Source: Magallana gigas (Eukaryota). From it: a stretch of 64,000 nt of DNA. Positions within the stretch are counted from its first letter, which is position 1. Each line of letters begins with the position of its first letter. The stretch lies in assembly GCF_963853765.1 (NCBI RefSeq), contig NC_088857.1, positions 13,392,001-13,456,000 on the forward strand. Reading direction: 5' to 3'. Under the pieces are notes generated by a model, which was given only the letters and a program-made list of their open reading frames with translations, had not been told where the DNA came from and did no database searches. Of the stretch, positions 35,123 to 64,000 are shown piece after piece. The translations under genes and the position numbers were made by a program.

Positions 35123-36008
35123 TCAAGGTTCTTTACCGCTGGCCTTTGGTGAGTCCAACATGACATTTTCCATAGAGTAATTAATATTAGTCACTGTGTA
35201 TGATGTTAATTTTTCACCATTGATGTCGGCTAGGAGCTCATCTACGGATTTACTGAAACAGGAAACAATACAAACATTAATATCCGACCTTTTTTCCTTC
35301 AAAGGAGGCATATTTGTGTTGTTTTAGTATCCTATTGAATGTCAAGGTTTCAAAGAGAAAAAAACCCGCCAAAGAATGATAATATTAAGAATATTTACAA
35401 CGAGAATTTAGCGTCGAAAGTACCCTCTGATATTTGCATTTTTCACTTTCAAAGTCTAAACAAACAACACTACATGTACATTTAAAACCATAGTCTCATA
35501 AAGAAGAATTCGAGAAAATGATGAAAAATATTTTTTGGTATCGAAAGATGTTTATTTTAATCGAAACTATGGGTTTCACTCAAAACGACATATTACATGT
35601 AATTTATTTGCAGTAAGATACAGTTGAAAAGTTTAGAAACAATCAGTGGTTCTATTTTCCAATCAGAAAACACCAAATTAAGGAGTATGTCATACGATAA
35701 AACGAAAAACAATTCATAAATATATTCAAATCCAAATATCTACAAACATTTTAGTTAAAAAAAATAACATTGTTATTATTTTGTGAGAATCGATTAATAT
35801 AAAGATATCTCCACAAATGTTGTAGAGATCATTTAAATTCATCTACAGATAACAAACCTGATAAAATCCTCACGGAATTGTTGAAGAAGAGCCATAGTAT
35901 ATAGCCCGGATTCCAATGGTTCATCGGCTGATGGTGATTGCACTTTACATAAAGCAAAGGAAATGATGAAATTATCTCCCCTTGGTTCTAATAAGGTCCG
36001 AGGGGGAT
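35123..36008 (-). CDS. Caspase small subunit (p10)-like exons of gene A
   Basis: PRGDNFIISFAL...SGLYTMALLQQF...KSVDELLADIN parallels caspase-3 PVEADFLYAYST...GSWFIQSLCAML...EFMHILTRVN. A phase-2 intron joins the two exons in frame. Confidence 0.7.
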
Positions 36009-39000
36009 CTGAAAAAAGTAAACTTGAATTTATTTTAAAAATGTGTTACATAGTGGTTTATGTTATTATGTGACAAAATTAACCACGGTAAAACTCATTC
36101 GCCTATCTATTAGATTCAATTTTTTCTCTGTTCACTTTATCAGTCTGAGAATAAACCCTATCTATTTACATTTTGACGTTATGTTAAAATTCCTTAAAAT
36201 TCATTTTTTTACTAAGTGAAGTTTACATTTAATTATAAAATGTGTTCAGATTTCGGTTTATAGAATTTGAATTTATCGAATTTAATATAGAAATGGTGAC
36301 ATTATTTATAGGGTGCAATTGCACATGTACAAACTACATGTAAACCTTCTTTGTTTGAAATATCTTGAACACAATACAGAAATTGCCGATTACATTCAAA
36401 TCTACTTACGTGGCATAGATACATGTAGGTTATTTCCTCAGACCTATTAAAATTCGTTTAAATCGCACGTATTAACCCTACGTGGTTTCATAGCTCAAGG
36501 AATTCATTGCACTCACTAATGTTTTGTGGATTATTTTGAACTTATATTACGGTTAATCTTTTTATTTACCGGGAAAACTATTGATCTGTTGATACTTTTC
36601 ATGAAAAATAAAAAAAAAACCCGAGTATATGTACCGCTTTTGGTTTTGACCTTTATCACTGTTGGAGCGTACTTCCGTTTTCCATCAACCAGTGTGAAGC
36701 ACTTGACAACGTAAGATGTCGATGACCATAGACCTCCAAACTCGCATTTGAACCTGGAAGATTTTTTGTGAAACGTGGCTTTCTTCTTTATTTTGTCCCC
36801 GTCCTCTCGTTCCAGCACAACCTGGTACTGCAACGATCCGGAAAAGTCTTTTGGAACTGGCGGGTTTTGCCAGGCGAGATGAATCTCCGAGGAGTTCACT
36901 TGGTGTACCAAATTAGCCGGCCCTTTAAAGATATACGCTCTTCTTAATGAAGATAAATGGCATGCATCAATGATGGATAGAACTTTGTGCACGTAAAACT
37001 TTATTACAAAAACTTTTGATTAAAGGAAGAAAACAACCCAAAACCACTTCGATGTATAAGTAAAAAAACACACGCATGAATGTCTAATATTGAATATCTT
37101 GAGTAAAAGTCATTGGAAAAAAAAGAATGCCAGGGTTTATTCTTAATAATCTTACCGAATTGAGGCGTTGTGAAGGATTTAACAGAGGGGTCGCCCTTAT
37201 CCTGGTTACGGACTGATACTTCATATTGGAGATCGGGATGCAAGTCTGTCAGGTGCACAGAATAACCCGGTACCCGCTTCCGTATTGGGGTTTTCATGAT
37301 CTTTGGGTCACATTTATACTCCACAATGTAAGTATTCTCCGTTTCCTCCGATATATAACTCTCCGACCAGTTGACAAGCACCTCAAAAGATGAGATAATT
37401 GTGATGGTCAGGTTTTCTGGGTTACCTGTAAAACCATTCATATATTTATTTTTTTATAATTATAACTAATGAATACCGAAAAAATGCAGGGAAGCATCAT
37501 GCATTCATTCCAAGAGTATGAACGACAACTCGGTTTGGTCTAATTACTGTTGCAGCGAGAGTGATTTACCTTTTGGTAATGTCTTTACTTTGACTTGTTG
37601 TGTGTACATCCTACTTTGCTTGTAAATTGAAACACTGTAATTAGTATTGCTTTCAAGCTTCACAATCTCGTGAACTTGACGGCATTCGGGTCCCAGTTTG
37701 AGAGGTACCGGTTTGAACCTCTTCTTTCTCGGGTCCAGGGGCTTGCAGTGGGCGGTGTAAGTAGAGGCCATGTCTCTATCTTGAATGTCTACCCACCATA
37801 TCAACTCGCAAGAGTTACTCGTTTTGGAGGAGACAAAAAGTCTCATCGCCTTATCTAAAAATATGTATCGAATCCTTTAAAATAGCTATCCAATCAATCC
37901 ACTTCGAAATCCAGTGGCTGAATTTTTTATAAAAATAATGATTATATTTTTACAAGTAGTTCAGCATGATTAAAATTGAGTCAGATAGAAAAGCTATCTT
38001 TTAATTCAAATGTTGATTGATTGACTATTTCCGCACTAAATGGTTAATATATTATATAAAATACGTGCATAATACTTGTTTGTTACACTGTACAGTCATC
38101 ATTGGATTTTAATTAATTATTATAATTTAAGACGGCGATGCATTGTCTCTTAAGTCAATATCATCTTAATAGACGACGTGGCCATATATTTACATGATGT
38201 AACGTGTGCAAAATGTCATTAGTTAAAAGTCAAATATTAGATACTTATGTAGAATCTTTTGAAGAAAAGCGAGGTCATTTGGTGATTATATGTCATCATA
38301 ACTATATTTAATAAATCATATTTATAATGTTAATACTTATTACCACACCATTGCAAATTCATTTTTTTAGAAAACAGAGTGTGGTTATTCAAAAACTAAT
38401 GTTCGATACATCTACATGTGACTGGATAAGTATGTAAAAGTCTAGTCAATAAATAAAAGTCTTTTTTCAGCACATACACTTGATAAAGTCTTTAAACTGA
38501 TCAGCAGGAGTCTTGTTTGTGACGTTTTATTTGAGGTTTATTTCTTTTTACCAGTTCTCACCTGTTTCAATGCGAGCGATGATGGACTCGTCAAGCTTCT
38601 CATCTGGACTTTCAGGATCTGAAATATAATGCAACAACAATTTCATGACCAAACAAAGAGAATTCTAAAATGTTATTGGCCGACGCTTCGCCTGCTAATT
38701 TTGACATTTCATATTATGAAATACAGAAACCGGATGCCGGAATTTCTTAAAGATTTTGGGGTAGTTGTCCTTTAAATTTTTTTTAAATTTGGAATAGTTG
38801 CCCTTTGAATATAAACGTTAGATTGTTGTGTCTGGAGCAGAACAAAATAGCAGCGTCGAGATTTGCTCAAATCTTTGCAGAGGAGAAGGAAGAACATTTA
38901 AAATTGAGTATAACATTATAATTAAACATTTTCAAAGAGTATTTGAAAGGTAAGATTAATAATTCTGAAGAGTTTAAATGACTGAAATTGGACAGGATGT

Positions 39001-42000
39001 TAGGCAGTTCGTACATGAATTTGCGTAGATCATCACTTTTGTGAATAAATTTGTCAATTCATAGTCCCCAGGGAAACAAAACAGTAATTAGGTTTGTTAC
39101 TGACTGACTTCAGTAATATATCGGGTTGATCAATATCATAGATGTTGAGGCGAAAGTATTGTGCATGTTTTTAAGAAAGTTTCTCACTCAAGGTACTTTT
39201 TCGTTTTAGATATATACTTTAATCGACGTACATATAAGTAATTGTGCCTGACGTTATTTCATATGATTTTTTTTTCACTTGAAATTTCATGTATAATTCA
39301 TATGAGGCATATTTTTTCATGATATGAAATGTTAAATTTGATGAATACTTTACACTAAGGTTGTCACGGACATTCCTTGTTGACCTTATTACCCGAAGTA
39401 TCTCATGATTTTGGAATAAATCAAAAGATGTCATTTGGGACATTTTTTTCTACATCAAATGTTCTAATAGGAATTGTCTATGAGTAATTTGTAGTTGATT
39501 TTTGTGCTCTTAATTACAAGACAGTTTGAAAATTTGATCACATTTTAAAGGACAATGACATTTGATAAGCAGACAGAGTGCATTATGTAATTCTAAATTT
39601 AATTTCTGTATTTGTGTGTTTGTACTAACCTAGGGATCAGAACATTGTACCAGACGTATAGTTGCATTTAAAACCAGACGACTGATCGCACTACAGACAC
39701 GCCAATTAATGCAAAAATAGACAGGTCTCTCTTTTCTCTTTAACTATGTCAATTGCTCTTCAAGATGGAAGTAATTGGAGACCATCACCTTTTAGATAGC
39801 CGTATTGAAGTCTTTATCTTAAAATACCAAGACCCAATGTATGTAAACAAGGAATTTCTTTAAATGTTTTTGTTACATGTATTTTCGTTTTAACTTCAAT
39901 AGATAAATTACTGGTAATTGTAAATGTATATAGTCGGACTTTGAAGCCAAGCATATGAAACGTCTTGTGTATTAGAAACTTACTCTGCATAGCAATAGGA
40001 ATTACTTTCACGTAGGCATATGGTATTTCAGGTATGTAATTCACCGGTAAACATCTCAGTTCTTTTGCAACATCAAAGGTCGTTGTCCTGTTATTCCGAA
40101 AAGACAAACAATCGGAGCAGACGACAACGAACTTTTCTAGCACCCCCTGTTTATCTACCGGAAACTGCCAGTCAACCCAAAACCCAGAGTGCGATTCCGA
40201 CATAGCAGTGACATGAACCGGTCTCAGTACATCTGAAAGAAAAATATATGATCATGAATAAAGCCATATCATATTTATAGGCATATAAAATCTTAGATAT
40301 TAAAGGTAACTTTGCACTAAAGAATTGAAAAACGAATTGGAAAGGTGTCCTATGAAAGTTCTTTCTCTTCTTAATTTTAAAAAATTAAAGATCTTCAAAA
40401 CCTAAATATGGTCCCACGTGGTAGCTGACGGGAAAGAAAACGTCATCGTATGACCTGATTGTTACTTTCACAACGTGTTCCGTATCCGGTCGGACATCTG
40501 TGATTGTGAATGATGTTTTCTTAGTTTCTTTTTCTGACCGTTTGGAAAGGGTAACATTGGCGTGGTCTGTCCAGGTCACAATATACGACAAATGGTTTGT
40601 TTTTCTTATCTCTGGAGGTTCCCAGAACACAAATATTTCTGTGTCCGATATCCTTTGCGCACAGAGACTTCGAACTGCTAATACATCCGTATCTGCGACG
40701 AAATATTACATGCTAACGTTTACGATAATGCAAAATAGAAACTGCAAAATAATTTCGGGTTTTTTAAAACTAAAATATTCGATTATACCTTTGACGATTG
40801 CTCTGGTTCTTATGTTTGCATAAACTAGATGTCCGTGTTGTTTTCGTTCCTTTCCAATAACTGGTGTTACCTGGAATCTATACTGTGTATTAGGTTCTAG
40901 GTTGGCAAATTCTATTCGAGAATTTGATTGGAATACTTCTTTCACTTTTTGAGAGCCTTTGAAACACTCCACGTGAAACTGAACCTGGTCTTCTTCGTGA
41001 TAACGCGGCGGTGTCCATTCAAGAATAACTTCTCTGGACGAATTCTCTGTCACCCGAACACTTCCATTTGTCATGGAAGGAACTAAAATTGTTTAAATTT
41101 AATGAATTAATCGTTGGCGCAAGAGCAAACTATTTTTTCTACCAAATTGGCGACATATTTGGTAAACAGTTTTAAATATATTTCAATTCGTGTCCTGTAT
41201 ACGCGAACTTGCAATCCAAACCAAATGTTTGATAATTTAAAATGACGAAAAAGATAAAATTTGTTTTAGAAATTTATAATAGTTAATTAAGGTCCGACCC
41301 CCCCCCCCCTCCTCCGAAATATGCTTAGATAATGTAAAAAAAAAAACCCTGAATAAAATGAGAAAGTGATACCTCTGTTTACGTGGACGTGTATGATGTC
41401 AACAAAAATAACTTTGGGTTTGTTTCCAAACTTGTCTTTGGTATGTTTGTAAATTTCGATGAAGGGAATAAACTCTTCGTCACTCCCGTAAAAGCCGTAA
41501 TAATCTCCAAAGCCGATGATGACACACACGAACATTTCGAATCCTTCAAACACTTTACTTCTATCTAGTGCCTTAAACCATTCACGAATTTTCTCCCTTG
41601 GCTGATTCTCAAGCTTGACAACAGTTTTAAAACGCAATGTTTTGTCATAAAAGTCAAATATTTCCCCTGAAAACAATATTTCAAGTTTAATTATATTCTA
41701 AGCAGCTAATTACCAGATAACGCATATAGATTTAAGAAAAGATGATTTTATTATCAAACGAGAAAACTTCATATGGATGTTTTGGTGATTTTTGATGTAG
41801 GAATTGATTTTCTGCCTGATATTCGAAAACATAAACCAACAATTTAAAGATTTTTTTCTTTTACTGAATGGTACGAATAAAAGAAATAAAAGTTCTTACT
41901 CGTTTTCACGCTTTGCTCAGTATGCATTCCGTCTTTATAGTCATTTACTATGATAACACACAGTTCTACAATTTAAGCAAAAATAAATTGTAAACGACGA

Positions 42001-42156
42001 AATAAAAAAAATTAGATTTGTGTCACTTTATGGTATTCAGCATTTAGACTTCTATACTTCTCTGGTCATATACAACGGGGGAATGTGGAGGGGAAAGAAA
42101 TTCACTTTCTTCAACGAATTCAAGACGTCTATCTACATTTAAATTTGAACAAACAA

Positions 42157-42238
<82 letters not shown>

Positions 42239-45200
42239 AGGCAAGAACGCATTTGTGTTTCTAGAACTGAATGCACTACTTCCTGAAGTGTGGGGAGCGT
42301 ACCTGTGCAAGCATGCGTTTGTTCTGCAGGAGAAATGACTTTGTCGCACAGTGCAGACACTTTCACCTCGTAGTCTGTCTCGGGCGTCAGGTTCTTGATG
42401 ATATAGACTTGCTTACTGCTCTCACCCCTCCGCCATCCTTTCTGTTCGCCTTTCTTTCTCCATTGTATTATGTACTGTATTCCGTCGAATTCATCCTTAA
42501 GTAACGTGTCCCACGTGACCTTCATCTCTTTACATCCTGGTGTCACGTTTAACTTGTGGACTCTTGGAATCTTGTAGTTGTTTTTCCGTATTGGTTTCCT
42601 TTCTGTTGGGATTAAAAAAAAGGTCTTTGTTAAAGACCACTTTTTTGAATTATTGATATTGCTAAGTCCGTTTGATTCACAATAGAAGCTCACCCTGAAC
42701 TGTTCTTGGGGAAGGGAGTACAAAAGTCTTTTGATGGCGGTCTGGCTGGTCAGTGACTTTCACTCCCCCTTCCTTTCCTTGCATCTCGAGACCCCCTTCT
42801 TCTTTTTCCAAGGAATCTTATTGATAAATTAAACTACATGTAGTTGATTTTGATACAATACACTGATTTAATAATATCATGAGGGTTTTGTACTGTGCTA
42901 CATAAAGATGATACATATGAAGCTATGCCAAAGAATTCATTTATAATATTGCACGTATTATTTTGCAAAGTAAGATCATGTAAAAATTCGTATTTGATAT
43001 CAGTGATAACAACGTTATCAATGACAAACGACACGCACGATTCTGATACACGAACGATCGCGCACTATACACGAACGATCGCGCACGACACACGAACGAT
43101 CACGCAGAATACATGGACAATCTTTAACTTACTAAATTATCACGATACACAAACGATAAGGATAAAAAACGCAAACGAATGATTTTACACCATTGAACAC
43201 GCAAAATGAAAAATATTTTTTAAGATTAGAATTAAGAAAACGTATCGATTTAATATGTTTTACAATGCCTGTGTTTTATTGAAAAGCGGCATGTACAATA
43301 TCTATGCACTAATTTATTTTTACGAAATAAGCGATAAGATAGGATTCACATACAAATTAAATTGTTTTGTCCCTATAACGAATTAATGTAAAGTTTTATC
43401 ATAAGGTGAAGAAAAGTAAGTGTAGAAGTAAAGATACTGCATAATCTTCACGAATTAATTTTAAATTACACACGAGTTGATGTTTATGTAAATCTAAAGT
43501 AGTGGTTTTTAAGAGAGATGGAGTAGTTGCAGGTACAGAAAAATGGACGTTCATTAGGAAACCTATGGGTGTGGAGACTTATTACAAGTATCTTGGTCTC
43601 ATATTTTCCTGTAGACTGAAATGGGTCAAATGTTGTAAGTCACTTGCACCACGGGCACAAAAAGCATTAGATATGTTTTAAAAACTCCTTTAAAATCCTG
43701 AATAACCGTGAACCTAGAGTGTGTTTTAAAATTTTTGATAGTATTATTGTTCCTATTCTAACATAGAGATCAGAAGTGTGGGGAACTGATATCATTGAAG
43801 AGGCTGAAGCTGAACAGAGTGACTTCTGTAAATGGATATTAAGAATAAACATAAAAGCTACTAATATAATGGCTTGGGGAGAATTTACGTTATAGACATG
43901 ATAAAACAAGTGAAATACTGGTTGAAAATACCAAACAAGAGGCCAATAGGCCTGAACGGTCACCTGAGTACCATAGCCCAAACCCAAAGTTGTGGAGGAG
44001 TGTCATAAATGCATTTAATTGAGTTCACTCCCTGCCTGCATTCTCTTAATCCTATATGTTTTCAAAGATAAACTATAACAAGTATACTACTTATTACTTT
44101 ACTATTATAAAGTCTACATGTTTATTTTAAGAAATTTAAAAACTGGTTTTGTTTCAAATGATAAAAAACTTGCATCACTATTTTGATCATACACCTTCTT
44201 TATTACATTATTATCTAATGATTAATTACTGAATATGAACAAGCCAAGGAAGATAACTCCATTTTGAAGAAGCAAGGGAAGATAACTTCATTAACTGTTA
44301 TACTCCTTTTCCCTGAACTCCTTTCAAATGCTTTCACAATATAATATCAATAACTTTGATGGACAGCTTCATTATTTTTCTGTTCTAAACATGTGAATTA
44401 ACTCATTTCTTTTATTGAAATTCCTGAGCAGAATAAAATAAGACAAATACATAACCCTCTTCCCAGCCATAACCCTTGCCTTACATGCTGGTGACAAAAA
44501 ATATTATTAAAGATGACAGGATAATTTTTTCCTAAATATGCAGCTAGTTTTTATTCCATGATCTGTGTATGTAGATAAGATTTTTAAACATTATGTGTAT
44601 TAACACTATATGGCCATATTGCACCCCCCCCCCCCTCCGACTTGAACCCCTGACCCAGGGGCCATGAATTTCACAATTTAAGTAGATGAGTTTGTGGACA
44701 TCATAATCATGCATTCAGTTTTTTCCCAACATATGTGAATAGAGAATGTTTTCTAAGATATAATACATTTTCACTATATGGCTTAATCGGCTCCGCCCAT
44801 GGGCCTCAAATCCTGTCCCAGGGGTCATGAATTTCACTATATAAGTAGAATAGTCAGTGGACATCATAACCATGCACTCAGGTTTTTTCAAATATATATG
44901 GGATTAGAGAAGACGATTTTCTAATAATTAATACATTTTCACTATATGACCAAAGTGACCCCACCCTATAGCCTGAACCCCTGATCCAGGGCCTATAAAT
45001 TTCACAATTTTAGTAGAGGGCTTCATGGACATCATAATCATTCCTCACATATGTGGGAGTAGAGAAAAGGATTTTTGAAAATTTAGCTTTTTTGCACATT
45101 TTGCCCCTTCTGTGCCCCCCCCCCCCCCCCCCCCAGGAAAGGTAGAGCCATAAATTTCATAATTAAGAACCCTCTTACCATAGAGATGCTTCACACAAAA

Positions 45201-47525: not shown

Positions 47526-50500
47526 ACAACATGACAATTTGTTCGACAAATTGATTTCAACCAGCTCTATAGAATGACTAGTTGTAGCTTTATATAAAAA
47601 AACAATGTGGCATGACGTCGACGTTGTCTCACAAGTATCACAAATCTATTCAAACTTAGACTTATTTTAATAAAAAATGATTTTTACGATTTTTTTGGAT
47701 ATATTTAAAATTTTAAAATGCACTGGTAACGGGTTTAATTATACATTAGTTGTGTTAACGATATTAATGAATAAAAAAAAATATACTTATATCGTGTCTA
47801 ACACTCTAACGAATTAAATTTTGAAACCGGTGAAAAATAAGACTGAAATATCTGATGTTTTCCTGTTTTTCTTAAACGGTTTTGATATATTACTTGTACT
47901 AACTTATAAAACGTTAGAACCGGCGCCATTAAATAAACTGGAAATTCGCCATTTCCTCTGTGATTTCACTTCTGTAAAAAGACTTCGAAGATAAAATAAA
48001 GAGTATACCTTATTAGTACATTCAGTTTTGCGGTTGTGGTTAGTCAGAAACATTGTATTTTATACGCATGCCCAGATCGCATTTTCCATTATTATACAGC
48101 TTGTGGAAAGAGAGAAAAAAATGCTTAAAGCTTACGACCAATTTTGAAATCAATATAGAAATCGTACATAGATATAGCTAACATAAATTTAAATCTTTAT
48201 CAAATGTTTCTCAATTTCATGATCTTAATGATAATGATTTTAACTCTTTGTCCGGGGATTTAAGAAACCCACCATTGCTGTTATAGTCAAATTATTTCAT
48301 GCGCTTTGTCTTTAAATATCTGTTAATCTGAGCATCTTGTGCATGCAATGAGTTTAAAGGGACATGGGGATAATAGGTGCAGAAACCCCGTGTCCATCAG
48401 ACACATCACAGTACATTTGATAACAAATGATTTAATAACAGGAATTTGTTGTATATGCATTAAGGTATTACGTTAATAATTTTGGTAGGTTAATTTTGTA
48501 AGTTTTAGCGTCTCTTACATTGTCATCTGTCAAGGTTTGTTAATGTACTAACTAACCTATTTCTGATACATCATATTTTGATTTAACATCATAAAACATA
48601 CCAGATTTTTCTCTAGTTGTCTCGAGGTCCATTACAGATGGTTTACTAGAGAAATACATAAATCTCTATAAATTCGATCGCAATAGCATTAGCATACTTT
48701 ATTGGTTATCACTTTTTTGTTTCGAATAAAAATCAAATCTTTAGACAGAAATGAAATAATATTAACTTACTTAGTACATTTTAGAAAGAGCTATCGCATC
48801 CAAATTAATCCGGGCCTCTTTCCAAATGAGGATGGATATTGAGCCTAGCTTCATTTAATATCCAAATCTGTTTGTGATTGGTCGATTTACTGGCCTGATT
48901 ACCAATATCTATATATCAAATTTCAATTATCTTAAAGTGGCCATTGTGTGTGCTTCCCGCTTTTTATACAACCACGAAGCGGTTTAAACCTTTAAGAGAT
49001 AAATGTAGCATACGCCATGATTCTATATTTCGAGGTAGAAGGGAAAATAAAAGGAGACTTTAGTACTCTTCTATCTAGAAGCATTAGATTTACTTTGTGG
49101 CAATTGATAGATCCAACAGTGATGGTACATGGCACATAAACAATGTATTGCATATGTTACTATCCTTTTGTGTTGTGGGAATAAGAGATATGTTTTATAG
49201 AGAGGCATGCATATTGAAAATAACGACCAAAAATAGAATAGACTAGATCTCGTTACGAGTAACGAGTAGGTCTTCCGTCCGATTTTGGTTTATATGATAC
49301 AATGAAATATCGATACTCTCTGCCAAATCTGGGATCCTGGTGAAACTAGGTTTTTTGTCTCGAGACCGGAAGCGGACGAACAAAAGTGATTCATGAAAAC
49401 ATAAGCTGTTTTTTTTATACATTTGCTTAGTGCACATAACTGTTTATCATGCTAGATGAAACACCAAAGACTATCGGTTAAACTTGTCAAAAACATGAAC
49501 TGTTTGAACTCTTCTGGTGAGTACCGGAAGTGACAATTGACAGAATAAAACCCGTTAAACACATCTTCAATCAATTGTCTATAATTCATAAAAGTTCGTG
49601 TTCATTCACTTACAGTGACTAAAATCTCGCGGGTATCAAATTTGTAAAAAGGAAAGGTACCTAAGATATTTGATAAATCTCACCGGAAGTGGAATATGTT
49701 TGTTTATTTAGCATATATAAGATCGTGTAATTATAGAGCGATATTTATTCCATGTAAAAAAAAATAAGGAAAAAAAGGTATTTTAAGTGCTTCCGGTGAC
49801 GACTGGAAGTGACGACGATTTAAACAAAATAATGTAAACACGGATACATACTTAGGGTTATCATCCTACAAAGTTTGGTTGTTCATCACCGTTTTTTAGA
49901 TCTCGTGGAGTCATTGTTTTTTTGTCTCTTGACAGGAAACGGACAAACGGAAATGCTCAGTGAAAATAAAAAGTTAGTACTTCTTAAACATTAGACACTT
50001 GTACTTTATTGTTTATAAATTTTACTAAAATTGTCAAAGAAAAACAGTTAAAAACAGTTAAAACTTTCAAACAGCTTGATTTGTTTGAACCCTTCCGGTG
50101 AGGACCGGAAGTGACGGTTGAATGAAATGCTATTAAAATGAAAGCTATTAAACGCATTTTCTACCGAATGTCTATTATCTACATAAGTTTCGTGTATTAA
50201 TCACTTGACTGTCTTAGATCTCGTGGGTAAAACATTTATTAAAAAAAACGCTTTCTGAGATATTTGAGATATTTCACCGGAAGTAGAATTTTTTGTTTTT
50301 ATTTAACATCGGATACATGGCATATGTAAGGATTATTACTTATATTTCAATTCTATATGAACCAAATTAAATGCAAAAGAAACAATAATTTTTGAAGGGC
50401 TTCTGGTGACGACCGGTTATTATGACGAACAAAACAAAATAGTTTAAAGACATCTACAACTATAGGTCTATAATCCTACAAAGTCTGAATGCTCAAGTTC

Positions 50501-52516
50501 TTATCATTTTTAAGATCTAAATGTCACAAGCTTTTGTCGCGGGACAGGAAACAGAAGACAGGAAATGAACTTTGAAAAAATGACAAAAGGATACTTGAGA
50601 TATAATTTTGTTCTATTACTCCTGAAAGTTTCAAGAAAATCTATCGAGCCATCTCTGAAAAATCGTGTGTACAAAAATGGGTAACAAAATTCGTACCTAA
50701 TTTTCGAGCCACAGTGGGCTCTTAAGAATGACGCTATTGGCTTAAAACAAAAACAATAGGGACAACTACAAACTATGGTCTACCTATCCTGAAAATTTCA
50801 AAGTCATATCTCTGATAGTTTTTGAGATCAGCTCTGCACAAATAAGTCGTAAAAAATGACAAAATCGGCCGTCAATCAGGACAAGAAGTGACGACAACAA
50901 AAAATTCAAAAACATATAAAATTCAGGTAGTGTCCCATCAACTTTGAAAAAATTGTTGAGATCGGTCGAATAGTTTTCGAGAAATCGCGTGCACAAAATT
51001 TGAATGAAAAAATAAACAGTAAGAAAACAAAAAGGTCTTCCGCTGGAAACGGAAGACCTTAATAAGAGAATGTACGAAAACTATAAGGTCTTCCGTTGGA
51101 ACCAGAAGACCTAAAATATATGGTTGCTAAACAACGCACGAGAAAATACTGCGAACAACAGACCGATTTTTAATTACAGAACTTTGAAGCAAGTTTCAAG
51201 TCAGTCACCCACACATATACATATGTTTTGGATGTTGTTTTGAAAAGCAATACAGATCTCTTGTTTTTCCATAAAAAATAGGACATGTGCTTAAACAAAT
51301 GCCTTATTAATTATCACCCGACGATTGGTTTTTAGCATATATCTTTTTAAATATTTTAGACTTCCGTTCTACTTTTCAAAAGGTATTGAACTGATATGTC
51401 TGCAACCGTTGTACTTTTCATATAATGACTTCTTGCCATATGTAAGTTGTTATTAGAGATACAACAAGGTTGAGGACTTTGTGATTCTATAAAATTGTAT
51501 AAACATTCAATTCAGACAGCTTTGTTCAAATCACCGAAGAAGGTTTTTAAAGCACCTCTAGGTGATTGCATCTCCTACTTTATATATCAACGTTACAAAT
51601 TATTTAAATGTAACTAATCGAGGGCATGTCCATTTGAATATTATATGAAATTGTGTAAGTGTATACTCCTGAGTTACATGTTGAACAAGAGAGTTTCGAA
51701 GTGCAGTGTCTATGTTTAAAAAAAACACGGTTTATGAAATAATACTTACACTTAAAAACCGTTGAGGTCTGTGGAAATCTTGCATGTTGTTGCCATGACA
51801 ACAAGAAGAGAATAAGCATTGGGGCTCTTATTTGAATATCTGTTTTACTTCATACGCAAAATCTACAACCCCTCGCGGAAAAAAGAACTCTGTACTTTTG
51901 TTAGTGATTATCTGTTTTACTTATTAAGTAACATTTTGGTATGAAAAAGATGTACAAGATTTATATGTATATCAAGTGTGCTTTTTAAGCTTTTAAATGG
52001 AATGAAGAATAAAATGAGACTGTTTATTGTTCATTTGGCTAAATGGTGACACATTATCACTTTTTTCTAATTGTAATTTGAAAAGTCGTACCCATTTGTC
52101 GCTGAATATTTAAAAAAAAAAATTGCAATTTTGTTTGATAAAAGAAAACATTTAGCTACACTCGATTTGAAAAACTCAGAATCAACCTTGTCCTTTGGGC
52201 TCGGTGAAAATTATACCCCAGGATAGCTAATCATTGCAATATTATTCTTTTCAGATAAACAGGACTTAACAGCATAATCTGAACAAAATACCTCATGCAA
52301 ATATCCATATATTGCGTTATATAACCGACATACTTGCTACATACACAGTAAAGTTTCCAGTGTTTACCATGTATATGTGTATCTGAACATTCAGCTTTTG
52401 AGCAAAACACTCTCAGAATATTGCAAGGTGAAATGCTGGAAATAATCTTATCAGATAAATTGTGCATATATACTCACCAAATTCTTTAAGATAGAGGGAC
52501 ATTTCTTCATCTCGAT
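35123..52516 (-). CDS. FN3-interrupted pseudo-caspase A: FN3 - p20-like - 6xFN3 - p10-like (~970 aa modelled; first exon unresolved)
   Basis: In-frame GT/AG exons: 52478-52516, 42694-42816, 42303-42602 (FN3), 42058-42132, 41900-41965 and 41373-41666 (p20), 40789-41082, 40402-40692, 39984-40232 plus 38562-38618, 37570-37854, 37156-37425, 36635-36922 (six FN3), 35858-36008 and 35123-35252 (p10, TGA at 35123). A possible further upstream exon is 53082-53126. The link from 52478 to 42816 spans a 9.7-kb intron and is less certain. Confidence 0.85.
36635..41082 (-). CDS. Six tandem fibronectin type III domains of gene A
   Basis: Each ~95-aa unit has the FN3 W (strand B), Y (strand C) and L-x-P-x-T-x-Y pattern, e.g. 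ILEWTPP...NLEPNTQYRFQV and VNWSE...DLHPDLQYEVSV. All are on phase-1/phase-1 exons. Confidence 0.9.
41373..41965 (-). CDS. Caspase large subunit (p20, peptidase C14)-like exons of gene A, catalytically dead
   Basis: LCVIIVND (first strand), FVCVIIGFG (instead of ...LSHG) and KPKVIFVDIIHV (instead of KPKxFxIQACRG). Confidence 0.85.
42159..42233. repeat. (TA)n microsatellite in an intron of gene A
   Basis: Direct reading. Confidence 0.95.
42303..42602 (-). CDS. N-terminal FN3 exon of gene A
   Basis: MKVTWD...IQYIIQWRKK...IKNLTPETDYEVKVSAL; cag| and G|gtacgc sites. Confidence 0.88.
43490..45850 (+). mobile_element. Degenerate LINE (non-LTR retrotransposon) 3' fragment, split by a HINE
   Basis: Frameshifted remnants KVVVFK...YKYLGLIFS (RT thumb), KIFDSIIVPIL.x.SEVWG, VKYWLKI, RYPRQCFEML, and FRCSLHKLRIE...HFQFHC (C-terminal Cys/His motif). 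Confidence 0.8.
43933..45329 (-). mobile_element. HINE/Helentron-associated element with about four ~165-bp internal repeats
   Basis: Termini AAACAAGAGGCCAATAGGCC and GGTCACCTGAGTGACTCAGGTGACCT; repeats CCCTGACCCAGGGGCCATGAATTTCAC at 44585-45180. Confidence 0.8.
47413..47536. repeat. Inverted dimer of the ~55-bp hairpin mini-element
   Basis: Two opposed copies that form an almost perfect 120-bp palindrome. Confidence 0.8.
49243..51113 (+). mobile_element. Second HINE-type family element with AGGTCTTCCG subterminal repeat and two tandem 3' hairpins
   Basis: Starts CTAGATCTCGTTACGAGTAACGAGTAGGTCTTCCG, has internal degenerate repeats with CCGGAAGTGAC, and ends AGGTCTTCCGCTGGAAACGGAAGACCT plus a second variant copy. 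Confidence 0.65.
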
Positions 52517-55420
52517 CTTTAATAAAATGGCAATATTTTACGTTATCGATTATTATGTAATATAGAACATGTTGCTTAAAAAAATTGAATTGAGGATAGA
52601 TAATAGTAGAATGATAAATTTTTGCAAACATACAATTGTAAACAGTTGGCAATAAAATATGTAAATATCTATGTATCCTTCGTGGGTCATTAAAAGGTCG
52701 TTGAATACAATATTAATATTTTTAATAAATATAATTCGAAATTGAAATATACATCCAATATAATGATATTATTACTGTAATTTCACAAGACAAACAAAAG
52801 TGGAACTTTGTGTCTGGAACGTTTCCTACATGATGTCTGAAGTTATCTCTTAAGAAAATGCATATATATAATTATATATATATATATCAACCCCCCACAA
52901 AACATCATGGGTAGGTTTGTTTTATAATGCTTCGTACTGTGCTGGCCTTGTGGCCGATCGGTCGGGAATCAGTAATTAGCCTGCTCCAAATTAAGATAAA
53001 AATGTTTTATTTGTAGAAAAAAAACATGAAAATTTATTTTATACTTGATATAGTTTTCAAAATACCATTTTTCATACGTACTTTTATATAAATCTGGCAG
53101 ACTTCCTGCATGACCAATGAAGGAACCTGCAATAAAAATGAAAATGCCGGTGAAGACACTGAACAAATCATCATGATTATCACAGGTCAATCGTTAAATA
53201 ACTGTTATATGTTCAAACAAACGAATGCGATATCAGATCAACCCGACTAAAGGTTTATGCAAACATCAAACTGTACGTAGTTACCAACATGTAAAATCAT
53301 TTTCACACGCCATGTTACACACACGGTGAATTGTCAAAACTCTTCTTAATTCTTGTTTTTCTAGATCTAGTGAATGGATCTTTTTGAATCTTGTGAATCA
53401 TTTTTATTGTTTATTTCAGCTCTGCATAAACTGAAGTGAATTCATTTTAAGCCAGCCAGTTGATACAGCTTGTGCTACTAAATGCTTCTTCGTGTGTAAT
53501 GAAATTAATTTCCGGTCCTTCTCATATTCATTTAATCTATTTCTTTCTTCGGGGATTCCACCATAAAAAATTAAGAAATTTGTATCTTTTGCCTTAAAAA
53601 ATGAGTTACTTTGTGCCTTTCAAATTTAATTAGAGTTATTGTCTTTTGAATTTGTGTGCACTATTAGGAACTTCCATTTTGAAATAATGATGATCTTTTT
53701 TGACATTAATTCAAACTAGATATTTATTGGATGTAGGATTAACATATCCGAAGACTAAATAGGGTGTTCCAAGGATATGACTAATATACATGTATAAGAA
53801 TGAGTTAAATATTCCCTATGCCTTTTGGGACCAACATGGAATAAACCAATATGGACAGTTCTGAAGAGTCTCTTTGTCTATTCATAAAAAAGAAAAGAAG
53901 TCCCAATTTTTCCAGTTTAGAAATACTTGAGATAGAGAGAAACCCAGACATACATACATACATGTGTATTGCTTTTTATAAATTGTCAGACATTGTTACA
54001 AATGACAAAGAAGAGGGCTTGAAAGACTGCCTGTGGAAATAAATAATCCTGCAATGCAACCTCTTATACATATAATCGGGTCTGTTGACAAGATAAAGAA
54101 GAAATAATCGATTGTCATATACTAGTCTAATTTTTCAAAAGTTGCAGAAATCTGTGAGTACAACAGGGAGTCCCTGAAGGCAATGCACGATAAGGTTGTT
54201 GGAAAGAAAACCTGCCGAAGATGGAAAACTGAGAGAACACGGTAATCCGAACGAAGAAACGCATATTTTCCATGAACTAAATGCTTTCTTATTCAATATA
54301 ATATATTGAACGCATTGACATTGTTATAAAAAGAACTTAATAGGAATATATATTACATACCATTTATGGTATAAATACCTTCTGAATATATTTCTTTTAG
54401 ACGAAAGGGGCCATTGAGTTGAAAATACTGGTAAAGTAAGAAGATCATTTTAAAGAACCCGCATAAATTACGTGTAGACAGTTTTGATTCCATACTTGGA
54501 ATATTAACAAATATCTTAATATTTTACTTAATCCATGAACCATATCAAGAGGAGAGAAAGCCATCGCGAGAAAAAAAAAAGAAAACACGCTTATCATGAG
54601 ATGAACATTACATGCAACAACTGCCGCACACAGAAAGTTCATCATTGGATATGCAAGCCTATAGAAAGGATATCTTACTTAGGCACAAAGTTGTTTTTCT
54701 TGTTTCTTGTTTTCTTGTTGCTCTTCTTGTTTCTTGTTTTCGTGTTTTTAGACCGTAGAGAAGGTTACAACAAATCAAAAACTTGAAATAATTCGTTACA
54801 TTAATTCGCATAGTTTTGCTATTACTATAAACATTACAGACATACTACCAATTCCAAACACACCTGTGGTTAACCAGTAGGCGTGGTCAAGTTCTCAAAA
54901 AAAAAAAGGATATGACTTGCAATGTTAAAGAATTAGTGAAATAGTATTCCTTATGCCTCTTGATTTCTTAAAAGTATCACAGTCTTATCATTAGAGAGAG
55001 AAAATCCATTTTTTTTTATATGTAATAATACAAGTGCTTTTGAATGAAATGAGAAGATACCCATCAATCAAAACAAGATATTTGATTATTTGTCAGACAA
55101 TGATAAAGATGATGTTAAAGAGAGATAAGGAAAGTGTTGTTGGAAAACTAAATCCTGCAGGATATCCGCTCATTAAAATTGTTGTACTAGTTTCTTAATG
55201 ATTGCATAAATCTGTGAATACAAGTAGGGGGAGGGAGGGGTCAAGCACCTTTAAATTTAAGACAATGAATGATAGGACAGGTTGTTGGCATCTTGGAAAA
55301 CTTTGCCCAAAGATGGAAAATTGGGTGACCATTTGAATCCAAACGAAAGAAACGCATATAATGAAAAAACTAAATGGTTTGCTTTTCGATCTGAAATTTT
55401 GAGCGCACTGACATTGTCAT

Positions 55421-56537: not shown

Positions 56538-58658
56538 CTGACGAAGCACTAAAACTGTTTATCTTTCATAAAGACTGTGTATAGAAGAGTTACTCTATTA
56601 AAATGAATCAAGTGTCCCGCCAATCAATTCAACATCGTACGTCTAAGAATATTAAATATGCGCGTCCTATCAATAGCCTCTACCGTGTTTATTGAAACAG
56701 GCATTTTTCTGAAGTAAAGCATAATTTTAGATGTGTTCTGTTATCTGAAGATACCTGCAAAAGAAAACTAATCGTAATGTTTTTGACTGGTCTTAAACGT
56801 ACTTAACATTATATAAATTATGTATATATTGTATATGTCCCCACGTGAGAGTGTTAAAGCAAAGAACCTTTAATTTATTAGGAGGGCTGAATGGTCGCCG
56901 CCATTTTTAGACCTAATTAGCCAGAAAGTTGCTTTTTTTGTTTAAATTATGTTTTCAGACTCTAAATAAGATACCTATAAATCATTAATTCTAAATAATT
57001 CGTTACATTAATGCACATAGTTTTGCTAACACTATGAATATAAAGGAAATACTGCCAATTCCAATCACATCCACGTATCCTTCATGGTGAAAGGTAAGTT
57101 GTTTTTTGATAAAAAAAATCCTTAATTTCAATAATACAGTTTTTGGTTTCTGGTAATCTTTTGTTTACTAAAGTATTTTATTTATTTATATAATATACAC
57201 ATTTTCATAATAAATCCTATATGAACTATGCGCGGATTTTTTACCGGTTCTGAGGTCCATTTTCGGTAACTTAAATATATTAACTTAAAAAGTTTGTTTT
57301 TCCTAAAAAGGGACATGGGTCCCATCCCTTCTAACGAACCCCCTCAAGGTCCGCGCATGTGAAAGAACCATGTTAAATATATGTATTTTAATGTTTCCTT
57401 CCCTGAGACAATGTTTAGATAATGAAAACCTTTTTCCTTACCTTCGGGAACAAGTTCTATTCTTTTAAATTTTCTGGCTGAAAAGAGATGTTTCGAATAT
57501 ATACATGTACTATAGCAAAAAACCCGTATATATACCAATGTGAAAGAATAAACATGAGTTATTAACCTCATAAAGTAAAAAATAATAACGCGTTTAAGAG
57601 GTTGCTGTGAGGATGTACATTATTTTAAGTGATATGAACATACGCACTTATTCGATTTTGGAATCCACTAAGTAAAACAAAAATGTTAGGAATGTTAACG
57701 AAGTTGACTGTTAAACACTGAAATTATAATAGATATTAAAATTGTAGAAAGAGTGATGAATATATTATTAATAACGTAATGCATAGCAAGACTCGCTAGC
57801 TAATAAATAGACCGTTCAAAAATATCGACACAGCAGGAGTTATGACACCATATCATTAGAGTTGTTCATGTAGTCCTAAGGCGTAGGGAGGACAAGATGC
57901 AATGCAATGATTTACAATGGATTTGAAAATAAAACATCAGTTTTTCTTATATGAACAGTGCTTTTAATAATTCAAATTGTAAGTTTTGTCATATTTCAGC
58001 GTATATGTACATGTAACTGTAAGAGTTAACACTAATAATCCTTTACGTGTATAAAATCTAAAAACTTATCCCACAAACCCATTTTCAAGTCTTTGTATGG
58101 TTTTCTCCAACGTTAAGAGGAACACTGTCGTTTTCTTTTAGTCTGTAAGTAACGTTTTAGAAAAATGAATTCCTCAAAACAACAAAAAGGAACAGAAGGT
58201 ATTATGATTTAGTCCTATTTTTCTAAATTTGAAGAAAGCTTGAACGTCAAAAAGAGAAGTAAATTTGAAAATAAACAGAAATTTTATCATCATCAAGACA
58301 TCTACCTTGACAAATGTGCTATTTTTCTCCATATTTCATCCGTTACTCAAACGCAAAGTTCACAGGAGACACAATCTCTCTGGCACATACTCATTTTGTG
58401 TGACATTTTGTCCAGTGTGTATTCTGTAACGCTATTTAAAGGACAACACGTTCGGCAGATCCAGCCTTTTGATACTTTATCGTTAAAGCATTGGCTTGAA
58501 TGAAAAGAATTAAGACAGATCCCAGATCAACATTGCCATTGTTCTAACAACCGTCACATACAACATCTCAGGAGTCCATTTAAATCTGTGTTGAAACAGA
58601 CGGAAAGGATTCTTTTTTAAATTATAATTAATGGTGGATGATGGACTAAACATTTAAT

Positions 58659-61600
58659 ATGGCGTCTACTAGCGAGGATATAGAAGAAAACATAGATGAA
58701 AACGAGAACACTGAGAAAGACCCCAATGAACAAGAGAGCGAAGAGAAAGACCCCAATGAACAAGAGAGCGCAGAGAAGGACCCTAATGAACAAGAGAACA
58801 CAGAGGAAGGGCTAAATGGTGGAAATCATGAAGAAATTACGCCTAGGGTAAAGTTTTATGAATTGTATTTGGCCGATAATTACATTTTTCACCCTGATTC
58901 ATTCTGCTATATGTAATTAAATGTTTTTGTCTTTCAACTTTAAGACTCTGGAGACATTACCCGAAGAACCAAGCGATCTTAAAAACCCAGGTAACAAAAA
59001 TCAAATAGTAGTAATTGCGATTATAATTTAGGATACTTAGGATCCCCTGACGACTTTAGTCATTAACAGAATACTAAACAATTAATCGAGCCAATTCTGT
59101 ATTATTTTGCTGCCAATTAGCTTGAATAGGGGTTTGAAATTAATTCTGGATCTCACATCAGGCGTTTTTGTTTAATTTCGTTTAACCCGCTCTGTTCACA
59201 ATTTTATATCAAACAAAAGGTTAAGTGCATCGATGATTTTAGTTATTGAAACTTTTATAAATCACATTTTCAACTGTTAAATTTGTAGTAATGTTAATTA
59301 CAAATATGTAAAATAATGTTAAATATGTTAAAATATAGGGGAGATAAACAGTTCTACAATGAATGAAAAATAAACATTTAAATGCACGTTTTCGAAATAA
59401 TTTTTAAAACCAGATGAAGTTCTTGTGCCAACTGACCTAAAAGCTGAAATAGCCGCCAACGAAATCTTACTGACATGGGGGCCACCAGCGGGTCTATCTA
59501 AACACCAGGTCTCTTATGAGGTAGAATGGAAGAAACAATCCGATTCACAATGGACTAAGGCAATCACCCGGGACCACAAATATCTGATAAAGAACCTGGC
59601 TACAGAGACTGATTACGACATGAAAGTTTCGGCGTACGAGAAAATCATCGATCCACAGGAACCAGAAGACTCGGAGCCCGAACCAGAAAAAGAGAAAAGT
59701 AAATAATAAGAATCTTAATGTGATATCAAAACAGTGATTGCACGCTTCAAGTAAGAGTGCAAAGTTTTGTTACATGTATTTTCATGGTATGTTTTTGAAA
59801 TATTTTTTTTTATTCAGAGTTATTTGAACATATGACAATTTTTCCTGAAAGTAAGTATATTTTCTTTTACAAGAACTAAATAAAACCAAATTATTTCTTT
59901 GATAACTCATCTATAATAGCTTCTATTTTTAGAAGTGTATATTGTTCAATTTTGTTTCATTTTTTCCCCTAAAGATTCGACCGTTAGTCAAGTCGGAAGT
60001 GAGGTAGAGGCATTCACACGTAAGAAATAACTTTATTTTGAATATTATAGAGAACAAAATCCGATCTTGTATGAAAAAATATAACTGCATTTTAAAAAGA
60101 TAAATTTTCGTATGTATTTTTTCCAATTGATAACTACGATTGATATAATTTGAAAAATCTCATTTTGATTCTCAAATTTTATTTTAGGAAAACTTGCCTG
60201 AAATATATAATTATTTTTTTTGTGTTTCAAAATCTTTCAAGCTTTGGCTTTGGTAATAACTTCTAAATATCTTATAAAATTAATTAATCAAAATTCAACT
60301 GTAAACAAGTTAAATTCAAAATTAATATAAATAAATTAGTATTGAAGTAAAGTCGGTTACATGTATTCTTCTATTTTCTATTTGTGATATCCTTTAACTG
60401 AAAATTAAAGTAAAACACATAACTAGGTCACTGAGTAAATGCATCTATTGAAAACAGAGAGAACCAAGGAACTAGCAAAGATCGTAGCTGAACTAGAAAG
60501 AACTCTGGAGTATCAAAAGCGTAAGTAAATAAACCAAAATGAATTTGTTAAAATGAATATCCACAAATGATTTTAATAAATTGAATATATTTTTATCAGT
60601 TATATTAATTACTTGCATAATTTATACTCTTGACGAAAACGTATTCATATGATTATGTATAAAATCAGGTCTCAACAAAGGTGAAAAAATACCAAAAAGG
60701 CTTGAGTCTAAACTAAATATGGGTAAGTTGTGATTTTAAACACTTAAGTCTACTATTTTCTCGTAGGATAAAATACTTTCATTTATCAATCCTTTTTAAC
60801 ATACTTGAGTTGAAATACCAAATGAAAATTGAAGGGTTGTTAAATTTAGAAAAATATAAATTTAAGACGCATTTTAGCTAACAATTAAAATAGATGAAGA
60901 TATCGATGTGACAGCAAAAAAGAGTTAAGATCCAGAGTTGCAAAAAATATAATGAAATGTTGAAATACGTGTATTAAATAGGAACTCTCACAGAGTGGAA
61001 CGTTGTGATTTTCATATACCTTTTGTTTCAAATAGAAATTCTGAAACCAGTCAGAAGGAAAGATTGTCCAAAAAGTAAGAAAATATGATTGAGATAATAG
61101 AAAACGGAAAAATTATGATCCATATCTTAGTTCAAGAAGATAGAAAAACTCATATTTTATTGTATTCAAGTATTAATATTTTGTTTTAAGAATGTAATAG
61201 AATTTATCTTACACAGTATACATTATTAATGTTACTGTTAAAAAAAGGAATTCTCTCAAATGTCGACGTTTTTTGAACAGGAATTCTTTTCATTATTACT
61301 AATGATATGTTTGCAAGATCTCCACAACTAAAAGCTTCCGCCAGAATGCAAAGTAAGTTTTATGTTTATTTTAAAACAATGATACCTTAAAGAATTCGTA
61401 AAAGGTATTAGAATTTTAGAGAATTTGAAGAAAACATCTTATATAGTATCTTAATTTCGGTAAAACATCTGGATAAAACTATGTTTATCATTAGACACAA
61501 TATTTCTTTCTATAGCTGAAATTACCCGACTTTTTGAGCGCGATTGGAAAGGAGAAGGTGATATTGTTAGAAGAATCAGAAATGGCACTCGAGCACAAAT

Positions 61601-63991: not shown

Positions 63992-64000
63992 GTCAGGCTA

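Follow-up and report, generated by a model that had tools for sequence, protein, structure and literature searches.

The window analysed here is a stretch of 64,000 nucleotides of AT-rich DNA from chromosome C5 of the oyster Magallana gigas (C5:13392001-13456000). On its minus strand lies LOC105343466, hereafter gene A, which very probably encodes a protein of about 1000 amino acids (aa), predicted to consist of a short N-terminal tail, a fibronectin type III (FN3) domain, the large-subunit (p20) half of an effector-type caspase domain, six further FN3 domains and the small-subunit (p10) half; the confidence expressed here covers architecture and homology jointly. This architecture is new within the caspase-family pseudoenzymes. 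Taken as a whole, the observations are probably best explained by a dead caspase that was split by the FN3 array, whose two halves have repacked and which would act as a non-enzymatic cytoplasmic scaffold.

Transcript and reading frame of gene A

Positions 35800-41720 of the window were compared with RNA data: contigs from two sets, an unlabelled run and the raw reads of a stranded run. The X3 contig (record 5, 2853 nt, minus strand) joins the main p20 exon, seven FN3 exons (six domains) and the exon at 35858-36008, and all its gaps are CT..AC on the plus strand, that is GT..AG on the minus strand. The boundaries of its raw blocks (37566-37854, 37155-37421 and 36635-36921) were then adjusted for ambiguous bases. 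Its 3′ overhang, KSVDELLADI, opens the last exon, which begins at 35252, and its 5′ overhang matches the end of a short exon at 41900-41965 (KLCVIIVNDYKDGMHTEQSVKT) that supplies the first strand of the caspase fold (beta1), absent from the main p20 exon. The same joints were found in the X1 contig of a second study and in raw read pairs of X21; the first mates of this stranded run map to the plus strand, in agreement with a minus-strand transcript.

After splicing, the reading frame stays open between 42784 and the TGA at 35123-35125, over 14 exons in the window model, and P0005, a 998-aa protein assembled from public reads, is 99.3% identical to this model. The link between the exon of the N-terminal FN3 domain (FN3_0) and the p20 exon is based on P0005, RefSeq isoforms and orthologs, not on placed RNA reads. 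The original prediction, made from the letters of the window alone, had described one spliced frame running through FN3, p20, six FN3 domains, p10 and a stop; the joints of X3 and X1, the GT..AG borders and the identity to P0005 bear it out, and the exons at 35123-36008 are spliced to the FN3 exons (joint 36008>36635 in RNA, overhang matching 35252). Its domain order stood, but its exon reading had missed the micro-exon at 38562-38618, the linker exon at 42058-42132 and the beta1 exon. The 57-nt micro-exon is needed by the third FN3 domain and is invisible to a reading based on open reading frames (ORFs) only. The span 35123-42816, first taken for the gene, proved too short: gene A is about three times longer and covers at least 35.1-57.5 kb, with coding exons to 57477, and 42816 is an exon boundary only. 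The N-terminus of P0005 has 52 further residues, mapped to 42785-42816 and to the exons at 52478-52516, 53082-53126 and 57442-57477. The gene starts beyond 57.4 kb; the ATG exon must lie upstream of 57477, in the gap 57442-58659.

The 25-aa linker exon may be alternatively spliced, as a RefSeq isoform of 973 aa equals the 998-aa form minus exactly 25 aa, a comparison of lengths only. The X5 contig reads through the donor of FN3-6 into the intron (36204-36923) and ends at 36204 with a non-genomic T run; it could represent an intronic poly(A) isoform without p10, or internal priming.

The p20 half and its catalytic residues

The Pfam profile Peptidase_C14 matched the ORF stretch 41290-41697 with 22.6 bits against a cut-off of 21.4 (profile positions 36-128), and the Crassostrea virginica ortholog P0002 with 39.2 bits (E 7.9e-10; residues 175-294 on profile positions 1-129). 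Searched against PDB sequences, the p20 region found caspases exclusively down to E 0.24, the best match being a reconstructed ancestral caspase-3/6/7 (E 5e-4) and caspase-8 the next. The PDB alignment places FVCVIIGFG over FVCVLLSHG and KPKVIFVD over KPKLFFIQ, and stops two residues before the Cys; a MAFFT alignment with oyster caspase p20 exons sets DIIHV over QACRG, with Ile on the Cys. The p20-like piece of gene A is thus a caspase-type large subunit in which the catalytic His is replaced by Phe (GFG, codons at 41506-41514), the Gln of QACRG by Asp and the Cys by Ile (DIIHV, codons at 41386-41400). The same substitutions occur in four of the four oyster species examined (M. gigas, C. virginica and two Saccostrea species). 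Since the His and Cys are both replaced, the product of gene A is predicted not to be a protease. The position of the S1-pocket residue Gln283 (caspase-1 numbering) is Asp in gene A and in its paralogs B and C described below; the pocket residues Arg179 and Arg341 appear to be absent, as judged by eye only. The earlier claim of a p20-like domain and the loss of catalytic residues implied by the term pseudo-caspase were both confirmed by these results, the former through P0002, the window exon above cut-off and PDB matches to effector caspases, the latter through GFG and DIIHV in gene A and the same in its orthologs.

The FN3 array between the halves

In gene A the 578 aa between p20 and p10 make up six FN3 domains; the long FN3 arm proposed earlier does split the caspase domain. 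Four of the seven exon translations score above the 25-bit cut-off of Pfam fn3, a fifth reaches 20.4 bits and two are weak (E 0.19 and 0.044); the whole protein (ortholog) scores 119 bits. The array starts about 6 residues past the former position of the active-site Cys and ends about 12 residues before beta5, at the site where caspases have their short cleavable inter-subunit linker. Because the FN3 exon boundaries in gene A are all phase 1, the array most likely entered a phase-1 linker intron by exon shuffling.

The p10 half

That the C-terminal piece of gene A would be a caspase small subunit is reasonably supported, by modest evidence pointing one way. In the C. virginica ortholog a second, collinear Peptidase_C14 stretch covers residues 883-939 on profile positions 156-209 (E 0.01 alone), and the gene A ORF at 35842-36045 gives a weak match to positions 156-193 (E 0.22). 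A hidden Markov model (HMM) of the p10 family was built from the tails of gene A (window model and three orthologs), B and C and searched in 3404 ORFs taken from 30 M. gigas caspase loci and the window. Its best non-self match was a true oyster caspase p10 exon (L031, E 3.6e-4), followed by four "GSWF" p10 exons, read as such by eye, and by the beta5-alpha4 stretch of the Pfam-matched caspase locus L008; among these top six, only L031 and L008 overlap a Pfam match. Alignment of the tail alignment with oyster caspase p10 exons by hhalign gave P 2.7e-4 in the register expected from the fold, with EPRGDNFIISFA over IPVEADFLFFYST in beta5 and GLYTMALLQQF over SWFIQALCIVL in alpha4. No SWR motif was seen by eye in the p10 of gene A, and the best score of the p10 piece in the ESM Atlas, 0.84, is at chance level.

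Paralogs B and C

When P0005 was searched by tblastn, a further series of matches appeared on the plus strand, beginning at 59.4 kb and reaching the end of the window. The p20 piece, searched in the whole genome, has matches at exactly three loci, which all lie in the same region of C5. After the next 30 kb of C5 sequence had been added, exon models were built for two paralogs: B stands head to head with gene A, and C follows B on the same strand. The distance from the first known exon of gene A to the start of B is about 1.2 kb (57442-58659), and this arrangement suggests a shared bidirectional promoter.

Each paralog has, in this order, an FN3 domain, a beta1 exon, one exon for p20, four for FN3 domains and two for p10. 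Their modelled splice sites from beta1 on are all GT/AG, and their introns are phase 1 save for a phase-2 intron within p10, at the same place as in gene A. Peptidase_C14 matched the p20 exons of B and C with E 1.9e-10 and 5.6e-10, and their p10 tails score 64 and 57 against the tail of gene A, on a background of at most 32. By pairwise scores the domains of the three genes correspond one to one and collinearly: p20 with p20, p10 with p10, and the four FN3 domains between the halves in B and C with FN3-1, -4, -5 and -6 in gene A. In the caspase halves B and C are 20-30% identical to gene A; to each other they are 38% identical over the core as a whole. Given this correspondence domain by domain, the split is predicted to predate the divergence of the three genes, after which either gene A acquired two FN3 domains or two were lost from B and C. 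The identities between the three genes suggest that the split-caspase family may be an old one.

Paralog B reads SYG and IDVQPM, and its dyad is lost. Paralog C has ATHG and IDTCRT aligned on the His/Cys dyad of caspase-3, its nearest matches are effector caspases and its p10 contains the helix GWFMSSIIKNL, with no SWR motif seen; it could be an active protease. The term pseudo-caspase, applied in the original prediction, therefore holds for gene A, whose dyad is lost, but not for the family as a whole, as C keeps both His and Cys.

Conservation and annotation

The p20 exon was run by HMMER against 1.84 billion representative proteins; it matched the C. virginica protein P0002 (969 aa), 84% identical over the exon, and otherwise only orthologs of gene A and a protein of low-complexity repeats. 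With P0002 as query, a word-index search returned P0005 and a protein of Saccostrea echinata. Mixed-alignment searches for B or C proteins or for relatives outside oysters gave nothing but orthologs of gene A, fragments and Ig/FN3 proteins of insects that are unrelated, and a search of contigs for sequences encoding P0007 or P0002 found none. The gene A protein is predicted in five oyster species. Identities among oysters are 81% and 72% for p20 and 72% and 57% for p10, so that p20 is conserved similarly to the FN3 domains and p10 somewhat less. The split layout has so far been seen in oysters only, which does not imply a narrow taxonomic range.

RefSeq labels gene A "tenascin-R" or "uncharacterized" (XP_011449161.3 and XP_065940939.1, "tenascin-R isoform X3/X2"), and the names in its protein cluster are "tenascin-R", "uncharacterized protein", "Fibronectin type-III domain-containing protein" and, for the copy of Saccostrea cucullata, "PTPRQ-like". 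Tenascins have a signal peptide, EGF-like repeats and a C-terminal fibrinogen domain; a Pfam scan of the full-length ortholog showed none of these hallmarks and the N-terminus is not hydrophobic, and the name tenascin-R reflects the FN3 repeats only. A PTPRQ-like phosphatase would have a tyrosine-phosphatase catalytic domain and a transmembrane segment; the same scan gave no phosphatase family. It returned only fn3-type families and Peptidase_C14, with no death-effector or other death-fold domain. The N-terminus of gene A is polar and the highest Kyte-Doolittle mean over 19 residues is 1.2, too low for a transmembrane stretch or a signal peptide; the earlier statement that both are lacking holds even with the true N-terminus. 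It had also been foreseen that automated annotation would choose fibronectin- or PTP-like names and miss the caspase. The names came as expected (tenascin-R, FN3, PTPRQ-like), but the precomputed Pfam lists for gene A proteins already include PF00656.

Predicted structure

A two-chain prediction of P0005 residues 195-330 and 903-998 scored 0.02, with a partner pLDDT (predicted local distance difference test) of 30. AlphaFold run on six near-identical orthologs only gave a mean pLDDT of 42.9. A further alignment, A4, added fragment rows to the orthologs: exons of ordinary oyster caspases and, from B and C, those of p20 and p10. In the resulting model the block means of pLDDT in p20 are 51-85, mostly at least 64 with two blocks in the low 50s, and in both halves the predicted elements of secondary structure come in the order known from caspases, with beta5, alpha4, alpha5 and beta6 at residues 919-978.

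The A4 model was searched structurally against 48,161 chains. Chains consisting of p20 only aligned over 122-139 residues within model residues 191-340, for example caspase-2 (2p2c_A, Z 14.3) and caspase-1 (3d6f_A, Z 13.9, root-mean-square deviation 2.3 Å). Single-chain caspases aligned over 168-181 residues spread across model residues 195-981 at 3.5-4.4 Å, about 45 residues more than the p20-only chains. Among them caspase-4 (6nry_A) reached Z 13.7 over 180 aa at 4.2 Å and c-FLIP (3h13_A) Z 12.3 over 170 aa at 3.8 Å; caspase-9 (1jxq_A), Dronc (2fp3_A) and CED-3 (4m9r_B) also span both halves. In this model the tail of gene A takes the place of p10. FN3 arrays superpose on model residues 328-906, and a Foldseek search with the whole gene A model placed first the FN3 arrays of muscle thick filaments and receptors (FN3 repeats only). 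From these models, we regard the proposition that the two halves would pack into one caspase-like alpha/beta domain as evenly balanced.

Discussion

In the explanation that we prefer, that of a split, dead caspase domain with repacked halves, the halves would pack within one chain and close the FN3 array into a loop, or alternatively would pack between chains to give head-to-tail dimers. In such a scaffold the caspase-like domain would be the clasp, or a module for dimerisation, and partners would be held by the FN3 rod; paralog C, with its dyad kept, may be one of them. The role of a non-enzymatic cytoplasmic scaffold, taken by itself, is put forward tentatively.

Several observations weigh against this explanation. 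The repacked fold appears in the seeded model only, where caspase exons had been placed beforehand on those columns, and its p10 has a pLDDT of 36-54; used in the structure search, the ortholog-only model found FN3 arrays only and no caspase. The structure prediction that had been proposed as a check of packing thus agreed with it in the A4-seeded form but not in the ortholog-only form. A PDB search with a p10 profile of four gene A ortholog tails found no caspase, its top matches being NUF2 and BMP10 (E 0.07-0.25), and Pfam searches of lone p10 exons gave E 0.01-0.22 for gene A and no match for the separate p10 exons of B and C. MAFFT put the caspase p10 exons on the p10 columns in one run and wrongly in a re-trimmed run (alignment A5, discarded, in which they fell on p20 columns); the disagreement between the runs indicates that the similarity in p10 is thin. 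The suggested comparison of the C-terminal piece with caspase p10 was positive in the collinear Pfam stretch, the family HMM (3.6e-4) and hhalign (2.7e-4), and negative with the ortholog-only profile in PDB. The exon models of B and C are predictions not backed by RNA, and one contig (X5) suggests an isoform ending in the intron before p10.

Another explanation would make gene A a decoy after the manner of c-FLIP(L), the human pseudo-caspase whose caspase-like domain has no catalytic Cys and is kept under selection (PMC7586951). The dead domain of gene A would use the beta6 interface to form a heterodimer with one of the active caspases of the oyster and would tune the activation of that caspase, and the FN3 domains would recruit partners. 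A caspase-fold domain without its dyad is common to the two proteins, the protease-like domain of c-FLIP superposes on the A4 model, and the neighbouring paralog C would be a natural partner. We nevertheless consider the decoy unlikely: c-FLIP(L) has two death-effector domains, an ordinary linker and kinship to caspase-8 and -10, while gene A has no death-effector or death-fold domain by Pfam, has its nearest sequence relatives among effector caspases and not caspase-8, and carries the FN3 insert, and the p10 half that would form the dimer interface is among its least conserved parts.

It is no more probable than the decoy that gene A is a cytoplasmic FN3 rod whose p20 and p10 pieces are decaying relics with no caspase fold and nothing specific to do. 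Such decay would agree with the loss of the dyad and of the Gln of QACRG, with the weak signal and low AlphaFold confidence of p10 and with the possible isoform lacking it. Relics would hardly be expected, however, to show p20 conserved like the FN3 domains across Magallana, Crassostrea and Saccostrea, a split layout with p10 and its internal phase-2 intron kept in three paralogs at 20-30% identity to gene A, and a predicted secondary structure in caspase order in both halves. Somewhat more doubtful still is a wider proposal, that "split caspases" form an ancient family of molluscs in which a rod of folded FN3 modules stands in for the inter-subunit linker, and the rod's geometry or its binders would set the assembly of the fold, be it in a single chain or across two, C being conditionally active and A its dead regulatory partner. 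A read-through transcript or assembly chimera of an FN3 gene with an intronic caspase pseudogene is most improbable and was rejected, for although contigs are no proof of a single molecule and reads were placed on part of gene A only, the same joints occur in raw stranded reads as well as in the contigs of both studies, the frame holds through 14 exons and three further upstream, the same protein is predicted in five oyster species and the layout is repeated in two paralogs.

Effector caspases (caspase-3/6/7, MEROPS C14A) give the best sequence matches of both the gene A p20 and paralog C, and share with gene A the order of strands and helices in both halves and the KPK(V/L)(I/F)F motif before the active-site loop. 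Gene A differs from them in having no His/Cys dyad and no QACRG Gln, 578 aa of FN3 in place of the short cleavable linker, an FN3 domain before p20 and, by eye, no SWR motif in p10. Type II metacaspases, active Arg/Lys-specific proteases of plants and protists, likewise have a long insert between p20 and p10 of one caspase-fold domain, and metacaspase-4 (6w8r_A) superposes on the A4 model with Z 11.7. Their insert, however, is an unstructured, autoinhibitory linker of about 150 aa and not an array of folded modules as in gene A. The paracaspase MALT1 combines a caspase-like domain with beta-sandwich (Ig) modules in a cytoplasmic scaffold; these modules flank an unbroken caspase-like domain, which is catalytically active. 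An exon that looks to be of the MALT1 paracaspase type and not a caspase (KVALLIGNYDY...FCGHG...LILDICR) was noticed at L014:1501-1872 (C6:42045221-42045592) and left out of the caspase alignments.

We found no publication on a split p20-FN3-p10 layout, nor, in the library searched, one naming the locus or its accessions, in line with the earlier remark that no described family with this layout was known. In a survey of Mytilus coruscus (PMC10967218) a single caspase is described with FN3 "in its prodomain", together with 19 CASc domains that are p20-only. The former is the only published combination of FN3 and caspase in a bivalve that we found, and the protein is possibly a relative of B or C; compared by description, it differs in having FN3 in the prodomain only, with no split of p20 and p10 reported. 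The main text of another bivalve survey lists putative caspases without a recognised p10 and mentions neither FN3 domains nor a gene A accession (PMC7836458). A keyword look-up (without FN3) in a lophotrochozoan caspase survey turned up many odd prodomains and no insertion between p20 and p10.

Three paralogs and several genera of oysters have retained the layout, so the linker site can, it appears, accept large insertions, and the caspase fold would tolerate four to six folded domains there. The usual account of caspase activation is dimerisation together with cleavage of the short linker between p20 and p10; if the reading of a split-caspase family is true, it would represent a new gating of caspases by mechanics or scaffolding, not by linker cleavage. 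The dead copies A and B beside the dyad-keeping C would offer a natural contrast for the evolution of pseudoenzymes and the non-proteolytic control of the caspase fold. Caspase surveys, to judge from the main text of one of them, may overlook genes named tenascin-R or PTPRQ-like, and "p20-only" mussel caspases may hide unrecognised p10 halves.

Coordinates and minor observations

Table 1 Predicted exons and domains of gene A and its paralogs (window positions)
Feature	Position	Strand	Basis
Gene A, upstream coding exon (ARKFKRIELVPEG)	57442-57477	-	tblastn of P0005 and direct reading, phase 1-1, GT/AG
Gene A, coding exon (SFIGHAGSLPDLYK)	53082-53126	-	tblastn of P0005 and direct reading
Gene A, coding exon (RDEEMSLYLKEF)	52478-52516	-	tblastn of P0005 and direct reading
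Gene A, alternative first coding exon (MDLETTREKS)	~48555-48665	-	RefSeq isoform X3, UniProt A0A8W8N5W7-type proteins
Gene A, coding exon (SLEKEEGGLEMQGKE...PRTVQ), start of the earlier span	42694-42816	-	Sequence reading, P0005 match
Gene A, N-terminal FN3 domain (FN3_0), single phase 1-1 exon	42303-42602	-	Pfam fn3 E 9.1e-8, splice sites, P0005
Gene A, 25-aa linker exon, 75 nt (DRRLEFVEESEFLSPPHSPVVYDQR)	42058-42132	-	Ortholog alignment; isoform lengths
Gene A, caspase beta1 exon, 66 nt (KLCVIIVNDYKDGMHTEQSVKT)	41900-41965	-	Loose 5′ end of RNA contigs X1 and X3 behind 41666
Gene A, main p20-like exon (alpha1 to beta4)	41373-41666	-	Pfam Peptidase_C14 22.6 bits; PDB alignment; RNA contig
Gene A, FN3-1	40789-41082	-	Pfam fn3 E 1.1e-9; RNA joints
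Gene A, FN3-2	40402-40692	-	Pfam fn3 E 5.1e-7; RNA joints
Gene A, FN3-3, first exon	39984-40232	-	Weak Pfam fn3 E 0.19; RNA joints
Gene A, FN3-3, 57-nt micro-exon	38562-38618	-	Joints 38618>39984 and 37854>38562 in X1, X3 and X21
Gene A, FN3-4 (second FN3 of the array in paralogs B and C)	37570-37854	-	Pfam fn3 E 0.044; RNA joints
Gene A, FN3-5	37156-37425	-	Pfam fn3 E 3e-8; RNA joints
Gene A, FN3-6	36635-36922	-	Pfam fn3 E 6.1e-4; RNA joints
Gene A, p10-like exon 1 (beta5, alpha4: LEPRGDNFIISFA...GLYTMALLQQFREDF)	35858-36008	-	RNA joint 36008>36635; Pfam C14; family HMM; hhalign
Gene A, p10-like exon 2 (alpha5, beta6: SVDELLADIN...SYTVTNINY) and TGA at 35123-35125	35123-35252	-	RNA contig loose end
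Paralog B, from acidic first coding exon	58659-64000	+	tblastn; Pfam C14 E 1.9e-10; open spliced model from beta1 to stop
Paralog B, FN3_0 (acceptor not fixed)	59422-59698	+	tblastn, exon model
Paralog B, beta1	61281-61352	+	tblastn, exon model
Paralog B, p20	61516-61830	+	tblastn, exon model
Paralog B, four FN3 exons	61956-62252, 62401-62673, 63163-63435, 63704-63991	+	Exon model
Paralog B, p10 exons (window-equivalent, past the window end)	64140-64284, 64500-64620	+	Exon model
Paralog C	L005:5518-10000 and L006:1-6076 (window-equivalent 69.5-80.1 kb)	+	Exon model

An Rfam scan of 34-64 kb gave no match. A run of 149 undetermined bases (N) lies near the window start, at 1983-2131, and a long (TA)n microsatellite at 42160-42250, in the intron after the FN3_0 exon. 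An interspersed repeat at 38760-38980, in an intron of gene A, has at least 747 candidate genomic copies on all chromosomes at about 79% identity and accounts for a spike of RNA depth (1832-5094) over these positions.

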